The notes under the pieces: model-generated | What the model was told of the DNA's origin: nothing | What the model saw: the letters and a program-made list of their open reading frames with translations, nothing else | The model's database searches: none | Translations under genes and position numbers: made by a program | Part shown: one piece after another, positions 1 through 12,400 of the stretch | Numbering within the stretch: position 1 is the stretch's first letter | Layout: the number at the start of each line of letters is the position of its first letter | DNA from: Amoeboradix gromovi X-113 | Taxonomy: Eukaryota; Fungi; Sanchytriomycota | NCBI GenBank assembly: GCA_018985225.1 | Contig: JADGIF010000135.1 | Location: forward strand, 1-18,042 | DNA: 18,042 nt | Reading direction: 5' to 3'

Positions 1-235
1 TGTAATAGTGATACTTTATTTGAAATAAAGATTGGATGAAAGAGTAAGAGAATAGCTGTACAGAATATTTGTTTTTGAAATTTCGATACAAAAAGTTATT
101 TATTTTCCTTTTATACTCGTCAACTCCGCAGCTAGCTGAATGTCCACTCGCCTCTTAAATCCATAAATTAATAAAGCTGAAATAATGATTCAAACTTTAT
201 CAGAAAGTTAGTCCAGTTTTCATATTTGATGTCCC
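1..235 (-). mobile_element. Partial second copy of the TIR element at 8958-9416 (one end visible, runs off the window start)
   Basis: About 5-235 aligns co-linearly with about 9240-9416 (e.g. ttatttgaaataaagattggatgaaagagtaaga; ttttccttttatactcgtcaactccgca; gctgaatgtccactcgcctcttaaat). It ends in the TIR gttagtccagttttcatatttgatgtccc (207-235) followed by tttt, and has 31-nt and 23-nt segments that the other copy lacks. Confidence 0.9.
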
Positions 236-6569: not shown

Positions 6570-8924
6570 TTAGTTTACGTTCTCATTGAGCCATTGCATC
6601 GTCAACCCGTACCATTTTTTGGTTATATTTATACTTTTGTATACATTTGCCACATCGCCATCTACTTTGCAGCCTGGTCCCCTTGTATCATTCATTAAAA
6701 CATCTGATTGATGCACTATGCTCAGTTGTTTCAAGACATCCAGTGCTAGGTAATCATCGAATAGCAGCATGTAGCTTAAGACTCCTGAATCCTGATTCAG
6801 TTTGAATGATATCGATCCAATCTGAATCAGTTCTTCAATTGAAACTTGCTTAAAATAAACTATTTCAGTATTATTGAAGCACATGAAGGTAACCATGAAT
6901 GTTTTTTTGGAGAGCAGATCATTGACTTGGATGCTCTGTTTGTTTGTACATTCAATAATGAAATTAGCGTTATTATTTACACAGGTGGCAGTTGTAGTGA
7001 ATCGCGGCCAGGATTCCAAAGTATCTACAATATCGCATGCAGGAGTTTCACTATTAATAGATTGTCCCTGACACGAACTACGGGATCTCCACTGCTTGGC
7101 ATTCTCCATTTCGTGGCACTGAACAATTTGATAAATTTCATTGCAATTTTGTAAATTTGTATATCTTAACAATGAATACGAATTGTAAAAAGCATTAGGG
7201 TGATTTTTGTTTATTGAAGCCCTCATTACAAATTGCAGTATAGACTTGGCCTTCACACTAACCTTTCTGGACTCATTTACAAAGTGAATCGAGTTTAACT
7301 GCCGTGTCCATGTCCCCAGTAGTAACAGCATCACTTTCTCATGTACATCTTTAATTGGCGATTTTGGCTTGTTTCCACTAAACCATTCCTGTATACAACC
7401 CTGCTGTTTGATATTGTACAATTGCGCCTTATCACCATCACTGAAAGTGATATCGTATTTGCATTTAGATATTATCACAAGCATCTCAAATAAGGAGGTT
7501 TTGTTGTTTATTTGTTCAAGCAATCTCAAATCACTGATTGTCAGTCCATTTAGTACAAAACATTGCCCTAGTGATGTGGGTTTGAAACCAGTTACTAGCT
7601 CATGCTCTTCAAGGCTTTTCATCGCATTACTTACCAAAGAGCTGATAAATTCGTGAGCGCATTCACACTTTTGCATATCGTTGTTTAATCTACTAAACAG
7701 AAATGACTGCTTTAGCCATTTTATCACACTGTTGATAGTCTCAATCTTACCACGATCTATCAAATGTAGTAGGTGTTCGTTGAAATTCTGATGCAACGTG
7801 GATTCAAGCATTTGTTTAACGTTTGTACCTTCAGTGTTTACAATTTCATTTATTCCCAACCAAATGGCAAATTCTTTGATATTACTGAAGTTAGCGCCAA
7901 AAATGACTATTCTAGTGTTTATCGAGGATTTAACATTAACAAGCAACACTTCCAGTTCGTGGCTCAAACAAGCTCCTATATGATCTACAATTAGTAGTGA
8001 TATTTCTACCCTTTGCTTAGTCATTAATAAGCTCAGTTGGTTAGGTGTGCACACTACAACACTAGCACTAATCTCATGTGTGTTCATCACAGTACAATTT
8101 ATGCCTATTTGTCTAAATTTATTAGACCAATGCTGCTGCATTTTTAAGCAGGTGCGTAAATTGCTTTGCAGGCAAAATATCTGACTATCAGGGTATTTGA
8201 TAATAGAGCCGACAATAGCTACCTCCATTAATATTGTGTCCGACTCATCCTGTATTAGGATGTTATTGCCTCTTAGCAAAAATGGAATTACTCTGGATTG
8301 CGAATAAGAAAAAGAGGCGAAATCAAATAGCCTGTTAAATGGAACTGGTATTATGCTAGTACTAATATTACAAGCATGTTTTCCAGCCAACATGAAAGAA
8401 TTGACTTGTTTTCCTTTTTCATCTTCATTTAGTCTCTTAGACAGTTTGCTGTTACGTTTTTGTACTCGGGAATTTTTTGTTTTGGGTTTAGTACACGGCC
8501 TAGATTGCAGATCAGTTATATTATAGGACAATGGACTACTCAAGCTGCTGTACAAAGGTGATCTATTTCCTCCACCATTTTGGTGTCCAGGCACTATAGG
8601 ACTGTTAATTGACAATGTTGATGCTGAGCCTTTCCTATATTCTTGTAACTGTGGCGATATGACATTGCTTAAACTGTTCTCTCTTAGGTGTAGTGGTTGC
8701 TCGCTATCTTTCTTTGTATTTACCTCTCTCCATACTTGCGGTTCTTTACCTTCTCTAGCGTTACCTTGCATTACTTCTGGATCTTGTACTGGAGAATCTG
8801 GCATGAAAACCGGTGGAGAAGAATTTCTAATCAATTCAATCTCTTTAGGTTTCTTTTTAGGTGCCTTGTTTTCATTATTCACAGACTGTATAAACAGATT
8901 TGCAAACATAGATTCGTGTTTCAT
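6570..8924 (-). CDS. Mer3/HFM1-like Ski2-family helicase derivative, predicted catalytically dead
   Basis: Co-linear Mer3/Brr2-type motifs: FSYSQS (Q motif), WSNKF..IGI, VVCTP, RIVIFGANFSNIKEFAIWLG, LESTLHQNFNEHL, KWLKQSFLFSRL, PTSLG, Sec63-like region. Walker A and DExH are degenerate and no RecA2 is apparent. Confidence 0.7.
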   Translation of the reverse strand: MKHESMFANLFIQSVNNENKAPKKKPKEIELIRNSSPPVFMPDSPVQDPEVMQGNAREGKEPQVWREVNTKKDSEQPLHLRENSLSNVISPQLQEYRKGSASTLSINSPIVPGHQNGGGNRSPLYSSLSSPLSYNITDLQSRPCTKPKTKNSRVQKRNSKLSKRLNEDEKGKQVNSFMLAGKHACNISTSIIPVPFNRLFDFASFSYSQSRVIPFLLRGNNILIQDESDTILMEVAIVGSIIKYPDSQIFCLQSNLRTCLKMQQHWSNKFRQIGINCTVMNTHEISASVVVCTPNQLSLLMTKQRVEISLLIVDHIGACLSHELEVLLVNVKSSINTRIVIFGANFSNIKEFAIWLGINEIVNTEGTNVKQMLESTLHQNFNEHLLHLIDRGKIETINSVIKWLKQSFLFSRLNNDMQKCECAHEFISSLVSNAMKSLEEHELVTGFKPTSLGQCFVLNGLTISDLRLLEQINNKTSLFEMLVIISKCKYDITFSDGDKAQLYNIKQQGCIQEWFSGNKPKSPIKDVHEKVMLLLLGTWTRQLNSIHFVNESRKVSVKAKSILQFVMRASINKNHPNAFYNSYSLLRYTNLQNCNEIYQIVQCHEMENAKQWRSRSSCQGQSINSETPACDIVDTLESWPRFTTTATCVNNNANFIIECTNKQSIQVNDLLSKKTFMVTFMCFNNTEIVYFKQVSIEELIQIGSISFKLNQDSGVLSYMLLFDDYLALDVLKQLSIVHQSDVLMNDTRGPGCKVDGDVANVYKSINITKKWYGLTMQWLNENVN

Positions 8925-8957
8925 GCAAATATCAAAAATATCAAGTTAAATCATTTT

Positions 8958-8986
8958 GGGACACCAAATATAAAAACTAGACTAAC
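8958..8986. repeat. Terminal inverted repeat (29 bp), left in window coordinates
   Basis: Its reverse complement gttagtctagtttttatatttggtgtccc matches 9388-9416 with 2 mismatches. Confidence 0.92.
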
Positions 8987-9020
8987 TCGTTTTTAAGGTG
9001 CTCCATACGGAGGAAGTGCT
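8958..9020 (-). ncRNA. Candidate omegaRNA scaffold 3' portion (5' boundary unknown)
   Basis: Minus-strand RNA reads CUCC-GUAU-GGAG, then CACC-U-UAAAAAC-G-AG-UUAGU-CU-A-GUUUUUA-UAUUU-GGUG-UCCC. These are two adjacent hairpins ending at the element boundary, overlapping the 3' end of the TnpB-like frame. Folded by eye. Confidence 0.4.
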
Positions 9021-9314
9021 ATCATTAATAAAAGATCTTCTATTATACCAATTTTCTTTCATTGATGGTATTCCTCTTTTTAAAATAAAAGTAGAAGACT
9101 CTGCATCTCGTTCAAACATGAAAGGTCTTTGAGCATCTAAGCAAAAGGTGCATTTTCTTAGACGGTATTCTTTTCTAGAGTCATTTTGTAATGTTATACT
9201 AACATCATTACTCTTATCTATTCTAGTTTTTACAGAGTTATAGTGATATTTTATTTGAAATAAAGATTGGATGAAAGAGTAAGATAATAGCTGTACAGAA
9301 TATTTATTTTCCTT
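8982..9314 (-). pseudogene. ATG-less 110-codon open frame resembling the TnpB/Fanzor C-terminus (Zn-finger half and RuvC-III)
   Basis: Hand translation: ...SRKEYRLRKCTFCLDAQRPFMFERDAESSTFILKRGIPSMKENWYNRRSFINDSTSSVWSTLKTS*. CxxC (9152-9141), RD (9110-9105) and IL..G resemble the family pattern CxxC...(D/N)RDxNAAxNILxxG, but the NAAxN part is degenerate. Confidence 0.5.
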
Positions 9315-9387
9315 TTATACTCGTCAACTCCGCAACTAGCTGAATGTCCACTCGCCTCTTAAATAATGCTCCAAGTTGTTACTGAAA

Positions 9388-9416
9388 GTTAGTCCAGTTT
9401 TTATATTTGATGTCCC
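9388..9416. repeat. Terminal inverted repeat (29 bp), right in window coordinates
   Basis: Inverse of 8958-8986 and 28/29 identical to 207-235. Confidence 0.92.
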
Positions 9417-9422
9417 TTTTGT

Positions 9423-12400
9423 TTATTCTGGTGCATCAATCTGTTGTGCCGATGTAGTTCTCTGAATTTGCGAATTACAATATTTGTCCGGTAGTAATAA
9501 CAAATATTTTTCCACACAATCCCTAAATCTTTTCTTGTACTGCTTAGGTGATATTATCGTTGGTTCTCTATTCTCCCCAATTAAGCTCCCTCCCTTCTCC
9601 TTGAACACTGTCTCTAATTTCTTATCCCAAGTATATGTCCTAATAAAATCTACTACTCCTATAACGAGATCATTCGTATCTTGTACAATGCCTATAAGTA
9701 TTGAATAATCCATGACATTCTGGCTCTGCAAAAACAAAGTGTCGTTCCATATGCTGGCTCTAATAACTTTCTTGGCGTGTTCTCTTATAAACAAGGGATG
9801 TTCTTGCATGCTTTCAATTAAATTTTCATCATAGAGAACCGGTTTGCTGCTATCTACATGTCTGTTTCTAAAACTACCTTTCAGATCAAATATTTTATTT
9901 ACTTTGCAGTTATAGAATATGTTTTCCATAACCACTACATTTAACTTGTTTGTTTGACCAGTTGTAGTATTTTTGTAGTTTATTTTATAGCATCCAAATA
10001 TCTTGGCCAATACCGTTGGTAATGCATACAAAGTAGCCCTACTCATGTATTCAAAGTAAAATGGTGCAAATCTTAAAAATGCTTCAAATTCATGTCTAGG
10101 TAAACTTTTTATTATAAACCTCTCATCAAGAGTTTTTAGGAACCATGACTTGCTCTTCCCTCCGACATTCTTCATCTCTTCACTTTTGATTAATGATGTA
10201 ATGTACCAGGTTTCTATCTCGCAATTTGTTCTGATTACCCTGAATTGTTTAGCATAGTAGATTGTTAAATCGAGTTTAATCTTGCCTGTGTTCTCTGTTA
10301 TTCTGGCATGATGTTGGATGTATAGTTTGTCATCATATTTGTCCATCGGAATATCCTCTTCCAGCTCGCTTTGCATCATATTCTTAAATGCTTGTAAGTC
10401 CTTCTCAATGTCATCTGGTATAGCCTGCAGTTGCTCGATGTACATCTTATGGTTCAGTCCAAATGCAATAACGCTAGTTATCTCCTCATCCAATATCATT
10501 ATGCTACTATCGGGAGAGTAATACTCGTTGTCGCTTAGACGGATTTCTATTTTATCCAAAACAATATCCATCATGAAGCTGCTAGGTTTAACATCATCAT
10601 CGTCATCGTGCAAAGGGTATTGTTTGCCCAATTCTGGCAGATGCAAAACTTTGGTATCTAAATCTGCATCTGTATCCACGTCTGCATCAATTTTGCCCAT
10701 GGTGTTCAGTATATCGCTCTCTAGCTCATCTACAACGTCCATCAGGTGCTGTCCTGGAGAATGTCCCAGTTTAGGGAACGCTATCATTACCCTGTTAGTA
10801 TTGGTTGTCGTGTACCTGTTATAGCTCTTATTATAATACTTTGTAGGTGCAAATTGATTGCTGTAATCATGAATCATTTTCAACAACCTGGCCGTTGTTG
10901 GCGTAGTTGTTGGACTATTTGTAGTAGGAGTGCTACTATTAGTTTGCAAGGTCAAATAGAGTGTCAACTTGTTTATAATCTGGTTCCACTCTTCTGCCTT
11001 GTTATACAAAACATGCATGTATTTACACACACTGTTTACATCATTCATTTCACTGTTCTTGTACACAAATTGCAAATCCATAAGCGTGGTTGCGCATTCT
11101 ATCCTAGCCTTGTGAATCAAATCATAGAATTCTAATTGACATTGCTCTACCAACTCAACGTTAATTCGACTGATTAGACTTGCAAGATTATTGTTGAGAT
11201 GCAGATTCAAATCAGCATAGAACTGTATGCATTTGTCTTTTATGATGCGCGTAGTTTGATTTTTGAGCACATGGTGCAGCTGTAAATTGAATTTAGGTTT
11301 GATGTCGGGGATAATGACCCTGAATGGGTGTATCTTACTGGTGTGGAACCGAATCAAACAGCTGTCAAATAGAAAGTACTTGTCATGCAGCTGCATAATA
11401 TTATGATCGCAGCACGAATACCAAGACTGGTTATAATACAGCAACTCCAGGTACTTGCCAAATGAGTATTTCCACGTTAAGTCATTCATTAATTGGATTT
11501 TGGAACGTGTAAGACATAAAGTGCATATGGTGTACATTTCTATAACTCCTGGAGGGCTGGACTGAATGCTAATATTTGGGGTGGAAGGACTAGCGGGTGG
11601 TGTACTGCTTCCAGAAGGTATTTTGGTACTCGAAACACTGATCTTATAATTGTTGTGACAATAACTCTTGTTTATTGAATCTGACTTACTTTCGAATACC
11701 ACATCTTCTATATACTGACCAAGAGTAGTATCTGTAGATGTAAAATAATCAATGTGCAGCAACTCTGGGGGCTTTAGGTGATTACTTGCCATAAACAACA
11801 CGTATATGTTAAGGTGATATAAAGGGCTCGGTTTAAAGTCCATCTCCAACACCGAGTTAATGTTTGATTTGATTCGATCAAATTGCTTGATGAGTTGTAT
11901 GTCAGTATCGGGTCCATCAATTCCCGCTAGTACCATGTTTAAGTCGTGTTTATATTGATTGAGCAAGTTAGGTATTCCAAAATGAACATTAGGACTGGTT
12001 GAAATCAAGTTATTGTGCGCCTCTATTTTGCGATATAACAACGCTTGCAATTCAAGCACTTTGTCTAATGTGATAGTCGATGAAGACAAAACAGGCTGGT
12101 TGTTGTTTATTATCAAATTATCAGATTTAAAATCAAATGTTTCGCAACTTGTAGATTCTACAACGTGAGCTTCCAGATCAAGTAGCAATGAGTGCTCTAA
12201 TCTCAATGAATAGGCAGCTAGTATTAAATACTTTAATGTCTTTTTGACGTTTGAATGTGGCTCAATGTTGGGCCAGTGCAATAATATAGTGCAACCGCTT
12301 TTAGATTTACAGTGCTTTAGAAATATCAACGATTTCTTGTTTCCACTTTTATAATCAACTACCATTTCGACGTTAAATGAACCGCAAGTGCCCAGAGTAG

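Follow-up and report, generated by a model that had tools for sequence, protein, structure and literature searches.

The closest described system to the locus studied here is Spu-1 of Spizellomyces punctatus, with its protein SpuFz1 (PMC10432273, PMC3627910). Like the family in Amoeboradix gromovi, it belongs to a zoosporic fungus, has a single Fanzor1 ORF between 30-nt TIRs and many derivatives of about 500 bp, and shows conserved bases only outside the left TIR and a structured right end. Spu-1 comprises 42 gene loci and 134 ghosts without ORF sequence, with a TA-type site and the TAM CATA (PMC10432273, PMC3627910). In contrast, the A. gromovi family has about 800 copies in 10.5 Mb, GGGACA ends, a 4-bp ANNT site, and a longer, gapped left motif, and its copies keep pieces of the ORF. 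SpuFz1 has no sequence similarity to it, and RNA and cleavage have been demonstrated for Spu-1, whereas the A. gromovi family is known from sequence alone. A Spu-1 ghost is defined by having both IRs and lacking the ORF. The copy described here retains about 80 ORF codons, so the label “ghost”, given to it in an earlier sequence-only reading, has to be replaced by that of a deletion derivative (MITE). The family does share with the Spu-1 ghosts a motif outside the left IR only and a structured right end, which is predicted here.

The Sola2-Fanzor1 elements DFa-1/2/3 and PPa-1/4/5 of Dictyostelium fasciculatum and Polysphondylium pallidum (PMC3627910) are likewise TIR elements with AT-rich 4-bp TSDs, in which the same ends are found with different Fanzor cargo. 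Their TSDs ATAT, AAAT, and ATTT are the three commonest in the A. gromovi family. However, they are amoebozoan, have TIRs of 12 to 21 bp, and contain Sola2 transposase sequence inside the element, whereas L077, the intact relative described below, carries no transposase. The SfAV-type viral Fanzor1 elements (PMC10711439) are non-autonomous single-ORF TIR elements in large DNA viruses and are kin to elements of eukaryotic hosts. Their TIR and TSD belong to the RNA scaffold, the counterpart of which would be the hairpin predicted here. They differ in clade and hosts, and the relatives found here lie on unassigned metagenome contigs that appear giant virus-like.

Published work already covers Fanzor1 genes inside TIR elements, zoosporic-fungus derivatives poor in ORF sequence, and carriers of the Sola2 or viral kind. 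We found no mention of A. gromovi or of its Fanzor1 clade in the Fanzor papers and supplements examined. What is added here is a set of intact relatives sharing these ends, a map of the deletions, and a TAM prediction that is based on counts and open to testing.

A short TIR element between two genes

The window is the whole 18,042-nt stretch of A. gromovi DNA that was analyzed. Its features are as follows.

8958..9416, minus strand: non-autonomous TIR element (MITE) of 459 bp, derived from a Fanzor1-carrying transposon; the gene sense is minus
9387..9416, minus strand: left (5') TIR, GGGACATC type
8958..8987, plus strand: right (3') TIR, GGGACACC type, 30/31 identical to the right TIR of the intact L077 element
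9417..9423, minus strand: left flank with the TSD AAAA (-4..-1), C at -5, A at -6, and A at -7, which fits W-V-C-A-N-N-T, a candidate TAM
8954..8957, minus strand: right copy of the 4-bp TSD (AAAA), whose first A can add one pair to the hairpin
9237..9386, minus strand: left arm, probably a leftover 5' non-coding region of the parent, without protein homology; homology to L079 begins at 9236
8982..9236, minus strand: 3' end of the Fanzor1 gene, with zinc-finger linker, second CxxC (9152-9141), RuvC-III RD (9110-9105), and C-terminal tail; the stop is within the TIR
8958..9007, minus strand: 50-nt terminal hairpin, a prediction only and candidate 3' stem of an omegaRNA scaffold, overlapping the last codons
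8938..8953, minus strand: putative guide flank, if an omegaRNA is made, placed by Fanzor1 architecture (PMC10711439) and upstream of the Mer3-like ATG (8924)
1..235, minus strand: second copy, left half only, truncated at the contig start, with left flank C-AAAA (236-240)

The 459-bp element delimited by the sequence-only reading is real. On the plus strand, TTTT precedes it at 8954-8957 and follows it at 9417-9420, and both junctions are present with zero differences on contigs of a public DNA run. An empty-site joint was not found in the contigs of public DNA run X1. The terminal repeats had been given as 29 bp (27/29); they exist, and we now measure arms of 30 nt each (8958-8987 and 9387-9416) with 93% complementarity. 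The second copy claimed for the window was found as well, as a left half. Both copies have an 8-nt left flank in common (236-243 and 9417-9424), including the AAAA site, which is in the minority (3/40 left ends); this may be chance or a local hop.

The element lies 6 nt past the stop codon of Fab1, whose last base is the -7 base of the left flank, and 33 nt ahead of the ATG of the Mer3-like gene, all on the minus strand. The gap from Fab1 stop to Mer3-like ATG measures 35 bp with the element left out. The Mer3/HFM1-like ORF (6570-8924) matches Sec63 Brl only, and a helicase Pfam match is absent. The element may now provide a terminator or promoter between the two genes, and read-through from Fab1 would transcribe it in the omegaRNA sense. 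The putative guide flank is unique in the genome at up to 2 mismatches.

The assembly of A. gromovi, an algal parasite, comprises 10.55 Mb in 1,319 contigs. The TIR pattern gives 1,626 matches compared with 0 for the reversed control, which corresponds to about 800 copies or one per 13 kb, a number derived from TIR ends and not from read depth. A chance origin of the TIR element is ruled out. The minis are 390 to 680 bp long and carry many small deletions, and the 30 copies nearest to ours differ by 2 to 6% from their own consensus. The family is short, TIR-bounded, flanked by a TSD, high in copy number, and without coding capacity, as is typical of MITEs.

The TSD consensus is ANNT. The 4-bp TSD that had been reported holds at this locus; across the family, it is perfect in only 14 of the 35 complete copies (among L001-L071), compared with 3.4 expected (permutation, P < 1e-4), and AAAA/TTTT is a minority form. 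Among the 35 pairs, 21 are mismatched, with 0, 11, 15, and 7 differences at the four positions. Point mutation as the cause is ruled out, since the first base never differs; this would point to flank re-pairing, through either recombination among copies or wrong joins in an assembly of amplified short reads. Donor-flank carry-over found no support, flank sharing not being linked to copy relatedness (P = 0.10 to 0.68, at low power).

A Fanzor1 remnant and its intact relatives

The sequence-only reading had described a 110-codon minus-strand frame (9314-8982) ending inside the TIR. The frame is there, but only about codons 28 to 110 (9236-8985) are gene derived, the rest being non-coding left arm. 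The stop codon at 8984-8982 does lie inside the TIR, as in L077 and L079, which indicates an ancestral feature.

The window peptide alone yields no significant match in Pfam, NCBIfam, and PDB sequence searches, and a TnpB profile match is likewise absent. A profile test had been proposed for the 8982-9314 translation and a composite; it remained without a match for the peptide and below the cut-off for a fuller copy. Copies L042, L050, and L065 retain TS-x2-CxxC ahead of the second CxxC and RD, and a copy in which both CxxC pairs are present has PF07282 as its top Pfam row (E = 0.0023, sub-threshold). A profile of the copies' pieces, searched against 1.84 billion proteins, gave 12 matches, including complete proteins of 585 to 642 residues (P0008, P0011, and P0012). 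The window remnant is 55% identical to P0017 over 83 residues and 76% identical to the A. gromovi EukProt protein P0005 over 38 residues; the finger linker of P0005 is almost letter for letter that of the window peptide. A scan of IMG/VR gave no match.

All full-length relatives have the DPG, a Glu six residues before the first CxxC, the second CxxC, and the RD, with 199 to 218 residues from D to E. The RuvC-I DPG was found in P0008, P0011, P0012, P0013, and P0018 and in L079 upstream of P0017. The RuvC-II Glu in its alternative place (Ealt) is also present in P0017 and P0005. The DPG together with a Glu six residues before the finger is a Fanzor fingerprint seen in fewer than 1% of TnpB homologs (PMC10711439). 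As a whole, the motif agrees with the one given by Bao and Jurka (PMC3627910), D-x(125-275)-[TS][TS]-x2-C4 finger-x(5-50)-RD, with a spacing of 199 to 218, TS, two CxxC, and the RD 10 residues on. The window copy keeps the second CxxC and the RD, and its DPG and RuvC-II Glu are deleted.

The structure model of P0008 is of low confidence (pLDDT 46), and its top four Foldseek rows are SpuFz1 and GtFz1 at E values above 0.1. Its top seven VIA rows are all Fanzor1s (Z 7 to 10.6), with SpuFz1, PpFz1, and GtFz1 among the best rows. A second model is of low confidence as well (pLDDT 56); for the C-terminal model, the matches are to RuvC folds of TnpB and Cas12 (Z about 7). The Atlas groups P0008 and P0012 with TnpB-like DUF8286 clusters of Nucleocytoviricota (score 0.98, TM 0.70). 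None of the solved Fanzors has a sequence match to the clade, which marks it as divergent. The Fanzor1-type features of the clade are the length of 585 to 642 residues, in keeping with enlarged REC and RuvC insertions, the Fanzor1-like fold of the low-confidence model, a TIR carrier, and the absence of an IS607 recombinase in L077.

Motifs, profile relatives, and model matches support the remnant as the 3' end of a divergent Fanzor1-type gene, as the sequence-only reading had proposed, and none of the sequence-level outcomes named in advance as speaking against it, such as full-length copies encoding only a transposase, was found. That the remnant is the Cys-rich tail of a transposase or a chance frame, for which the missing Pfam and NCBIfam matches of the peptide could be cited, is refuted by the profile relatives with their Fanzor fingerprint (PMC10711439), the motif set, the Fanzor1 structural matches, and the lack of a transposase ORF in L077, leaving it a negligible probability. 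The copy at 8958-9416 makes no nuclease.

The remnant and its relatives share their ends. P0005 is encoded with 100% identity on contig C33 of the A. gromovi assembly, where the family right TIR follows about 110 bp downstream of the match. L077, on a metagenome contig, is a complete 2,071-bp element with a single ORF of 642 aa. A longer element with the same right TIR and a full RuvC protein, which had been suggested as a check, therefore exists; the DDE transposase that might also have been expected in it is absent. The right TIR of L077 equals that of copies L002 and L003 at 31/31 positions, with proteins 28% identical. In the metagenome loci L079 and L080, the RuvC half of the gene is followed by a related TIR, and L075, also a complete element, has GAG ends. 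The contigs L072, L075, L078, and L083 are densely packed with genes such as those for DNA ligase, dUTPase, TFIIB, and dCMP deaminase, and we infer that they are giant-virus-like.

Three further observations concern the metagenome loci. The intact L077 element stands directly after a histone H3-like gene (L077:1-144). L083 is a 70% relative of L077 on a contig with dUTPase and TFIIB genes. In a soil metagenome (L081:67-144), a right-type end faces an inverted Fanzor 3' remnant, the same mini-element style outside the assembly. In A. gromovi itself, the EukProt protein P0010 represents a more distant Fanzor1 subfamily, 33% identical to P0005 and 51% to P0008, in which KD replaces RD.

Longer copies keep the first 50 or so codons, comprising a basic N-terminus and the next strand and helix, and match the N-termini in L075 and L084. 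This piece is joined directly to the TS-x2-C motif, just past the RuvC-II glutamate, at a joint that, judging from L079, may fall within a microhomology no longer than 9 nt. The layout implies that the family lost the middle of the gene and that RuvC-II is absent from the window copy, which has also lost the N-terminal piece and most of the first CxxC, its homology starting at 9236. The claim that these elements “lost the 5' ORF” is therefore incorrect, since the founding deletion took the middle and longer copies retain the gene start. RuvC-I had rightly been called absent; RuvC-II, which had been called uncertain, is deleted from the window copy together with most of the first CxxC pair. No long frame holding the N-terminal piece was found in the assembly. 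On contig C1157, the RuvC region is covered by a 436-aa frame without stops that continues past the contig end and belongs to a sister subfamily (63%), and several gene pieces of 86 to 95% identity stop at contig ends.

The ancestry, ends, copy number, and deletion layout of the minis are shown by the sequences. As our main reading, to which we give a probability of about 85%, a TIR transposon with GGGACA ends, an ANNT target, and a single Fanzor1 cargo gave rise by internal deletion to the minis, including 8958-9416. The parent would have been a cut-and-paste element with one divergent Fanzor1 gene of about 600 codons, the last of which overlapped the right TIR and a terminal RNA hairpin. About 1.5 kb (REC, WED, RuvC-I, and RuvC-II) would have been lost by internal deletion, and further small deletions would have led to minis of the present lengths.

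Right-end hairpin and left-flank motif

The last 50 nt of the element are predicted to form a hairpin between the right TIR and a degenerate internal TIR copy. Compared with shuffled sequences, right ends are more stably folded (mean z -1.9, n = 59) and left ends are not (z +1.1 to +1.3). The hairpin register is common to L077, L079, L080, L081, L083, and L075, with G.U pairs present, and the pairing is G.U rich in the right ends of L077 and L083 (z -5.0 and -3.3). Where the ends go from GGG to GAG, a G-C pair of the hairpin changes to A-U. Both differences between left and right TIR are needed for the hairpin, and substituting the left TIR costs 6.4 kcal/mol. Taken by itself, the window copy gives a hairpin that does not reach significance over 83 nt (z -0.9), and folding the alignment yields a weak structure (-0.39 kcal/mol, with compensatory change in 3 of 11 pairs). 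Conservation at 40 to 160 nt from the right end does not exceed that of the remainder, and the right end has no Rfam match.

Fanzor1 RNA scaffolds include TIR and TSD (PMC10711439), and a hairpin that includes the TIR fits them. We regard the 50-nt right-end hairpin as a candidate omegaRNA, and the conserved predicted fold, found in right ends and not in left ends, agrees with the earlier suggestion that an RNA-like right end was retained. The right end may still give rise to an omegaRNA that takes its guide from the flank and serves a Fanzor provided in trans, a possibility we would put somewhat below even odds.

The target resembles the palindrome TACANNTGTA, of which the left half is far stricter. 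Across the genome, C at -5 occurs in 231/241 left ends; in right-type ends, a class that may include left-end variants, the mirror position has it in 261/474 (P = 2e-34). The -7 base is A or T in 226/231 left ends, compared with at least 49/261 right ends with G or C (P = 5e-10), and at -6 the left ends have T in 4/231 and C in 29/231. The left flank is thus strict, W-V-C-A-N-N-T (96 to 98% at -5 and -7), and the right flank is not, showing the mirror half-site weakly (G at +5 in 51%, T at +6 in 49%). L075 has the same left motif despite its GAG ends; L077 and L083, from a different subclade, are without the C at -5.

The left-only motif of Spu-1 is its TAM (PMC10432273), and W-V-C-A-N-N-T is our candidate TAM. 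A filled right end reads CCC-ANNT and then the guide match. A plain CANNT TAM is ruled out, since the filled right end also reads C-ANNT plus target and the element's own locus would be cut; the strict -7 base would separate empty from filled sites. Known Fanzor1 TAMs are 4 to 5 nt long (PMC13565253), so that a bias of the transposase alone stays a real rival. We lean slightly towards the strict left flank mirroring a target choice that co-evolved with the Fanzor TAM.

Mobilization and the fate of the minis

The genome has 29 matches to DUF7869, in frames of up to 687 aa, which we take to be Sola-type. GRG termini typify Sola2; the termini are GGG here and in L077, GAG in L075, and GTG at the left end of L083. 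The 4-bp AT-rich TSD is as in Sola2, with ANNT perfect well above chance. The minis were probably spread in trans by a TIR-binding DDE transposase encoded elsewhere in the genome, most likely of this Sola (DUF7869) type, which would have put them into W-V-C-A-N-N-T sites in fixed orientation. The proximity of TIRs to DUF7869 genes on contigs C556 and C558 was discounted as evidence, as TIR ends occur every 6.5 kb. On contig C488 (7415-12380), a DUF7869 gene (11139-11675) lies between two adjoining same-strand Fanzor1 pieces, probably a nested insertion. On the minus strand of contig C558 (3733-5625), a left TIR, a Fanzor N-terminal piece, and a DUF7869 frame stand in a row, possibly as a composite element or as chance neighbors.

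A separate family in the same genome is of the IS607 type. In L041 (1473-3488, on contig C542), a resolvase frame overlaps a Fanzor2 gene that is open over 671 aa and carries the DPG, E, and RD. Like the minis, this family is represented by hundreds of short 3' remnants, but it has a serine recombinase partner, no such TIR, a D-to-E distance of 134 rather than 199 to 218, and no significant similarity to the Fanzor1 clade. The 560 PF07282 candidates in the genome are mostly its remnants and were ruled out as members of the TIR/Fanzor1 family. PF01385 matches five places, none coinciding with matches of the TIR/Fanzor1 family.

What the minis do now can be read in two ways. They may be inert passengers in which remnant and hairpin were kept along with MITE ends, the flank asymmetry being an orientation bias of the transposase on the palindrome rather than a TAM, an account that is a serious contender although we stop short of favoring it. 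The weak mirror half-site of the right flank speaks for it, as do the two TIR differences, which could orient insertion, the related TIRs without a -5 C in L077 and L083, and the many small deletions of the copies. It leaves unexplained why the strict positions match a need to tell self from non-self and why the right ends of L077 and L083 pair through G.U, and it has to contend with the left motif that L075 shares despite its different ends and with the left-only motif that is a TAM in Spu-1 (PMC10432273).

In the other account, which we consider unlikely, the minis are live ghost loci. Each would make an omegaRNA whose guide is its own flank, an intact Fanzor1 would cut the site left empty by excision, and repair from the sister copy would bring the element back, so that homing drove the expansion and purged TAM-less copies. 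The skewed -5 and -7 positions, the ability of -7 to tell empty from filled sites, and the need of the hairpin for both TIR differences agree with it, and ghost omegaRNAs of Spu-1 are functional (PMC10432273). A source of Fanzor1 could be seen in the frame running off contig C1157 and in the pieces at contig ends, but that frame belongs to the sister subfamily. Furthermore, a 7-nt gapped TAM is unusual next to those of 4 to 5 nt (PMC13565253), purging to 96 to 98% requires very high turnover, and the region inward of the right end is no better conserved.

Under the main reading, a Fanzor1 transposon reduced to minis by internal deletion, the right-end RNA of the parent would have guided Fanzor to the empty site, and repair would have restored the element. 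The most far-reaching version is an undescribed Fanzor1 clade, exchanged between giant viruses and a sanchytrid through a shared transposase, with a 7-nt gapped TAM (W-V-C-A-N-N-T) whose outermost base spares filled sites, a library of guide cassettes scattered over about 800 minis, and a genome-wide imprint on the flanks left by Fanzor restoring excised copies; taken as a whole, we hold it to be improbable.

The findings add a Fanzor1 clade without sequence match to solved Fanzors and a right TIR that a fungus and a probable giant-virus contig share without a difference, although their proteins are 28% identical. About 240 left flanks were scored, and they come with a TAM prediction in which one position would tell self from non-self. 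A short candidate RNA and the natural intact proteins P0008, P0012, and P0018 are further resources. Evidence for homing is listed for bacterial TnpB/IscB only (PMC13565253), and a homing imprint on about 800 minis, if true, would document restorative homing at population scale in a eukaryote. The family bears on the role of Fanzor in the persistence of eukaryotic transposons and on the co-evolution of a TAM with a DDE transposase whose ends resemble its target.
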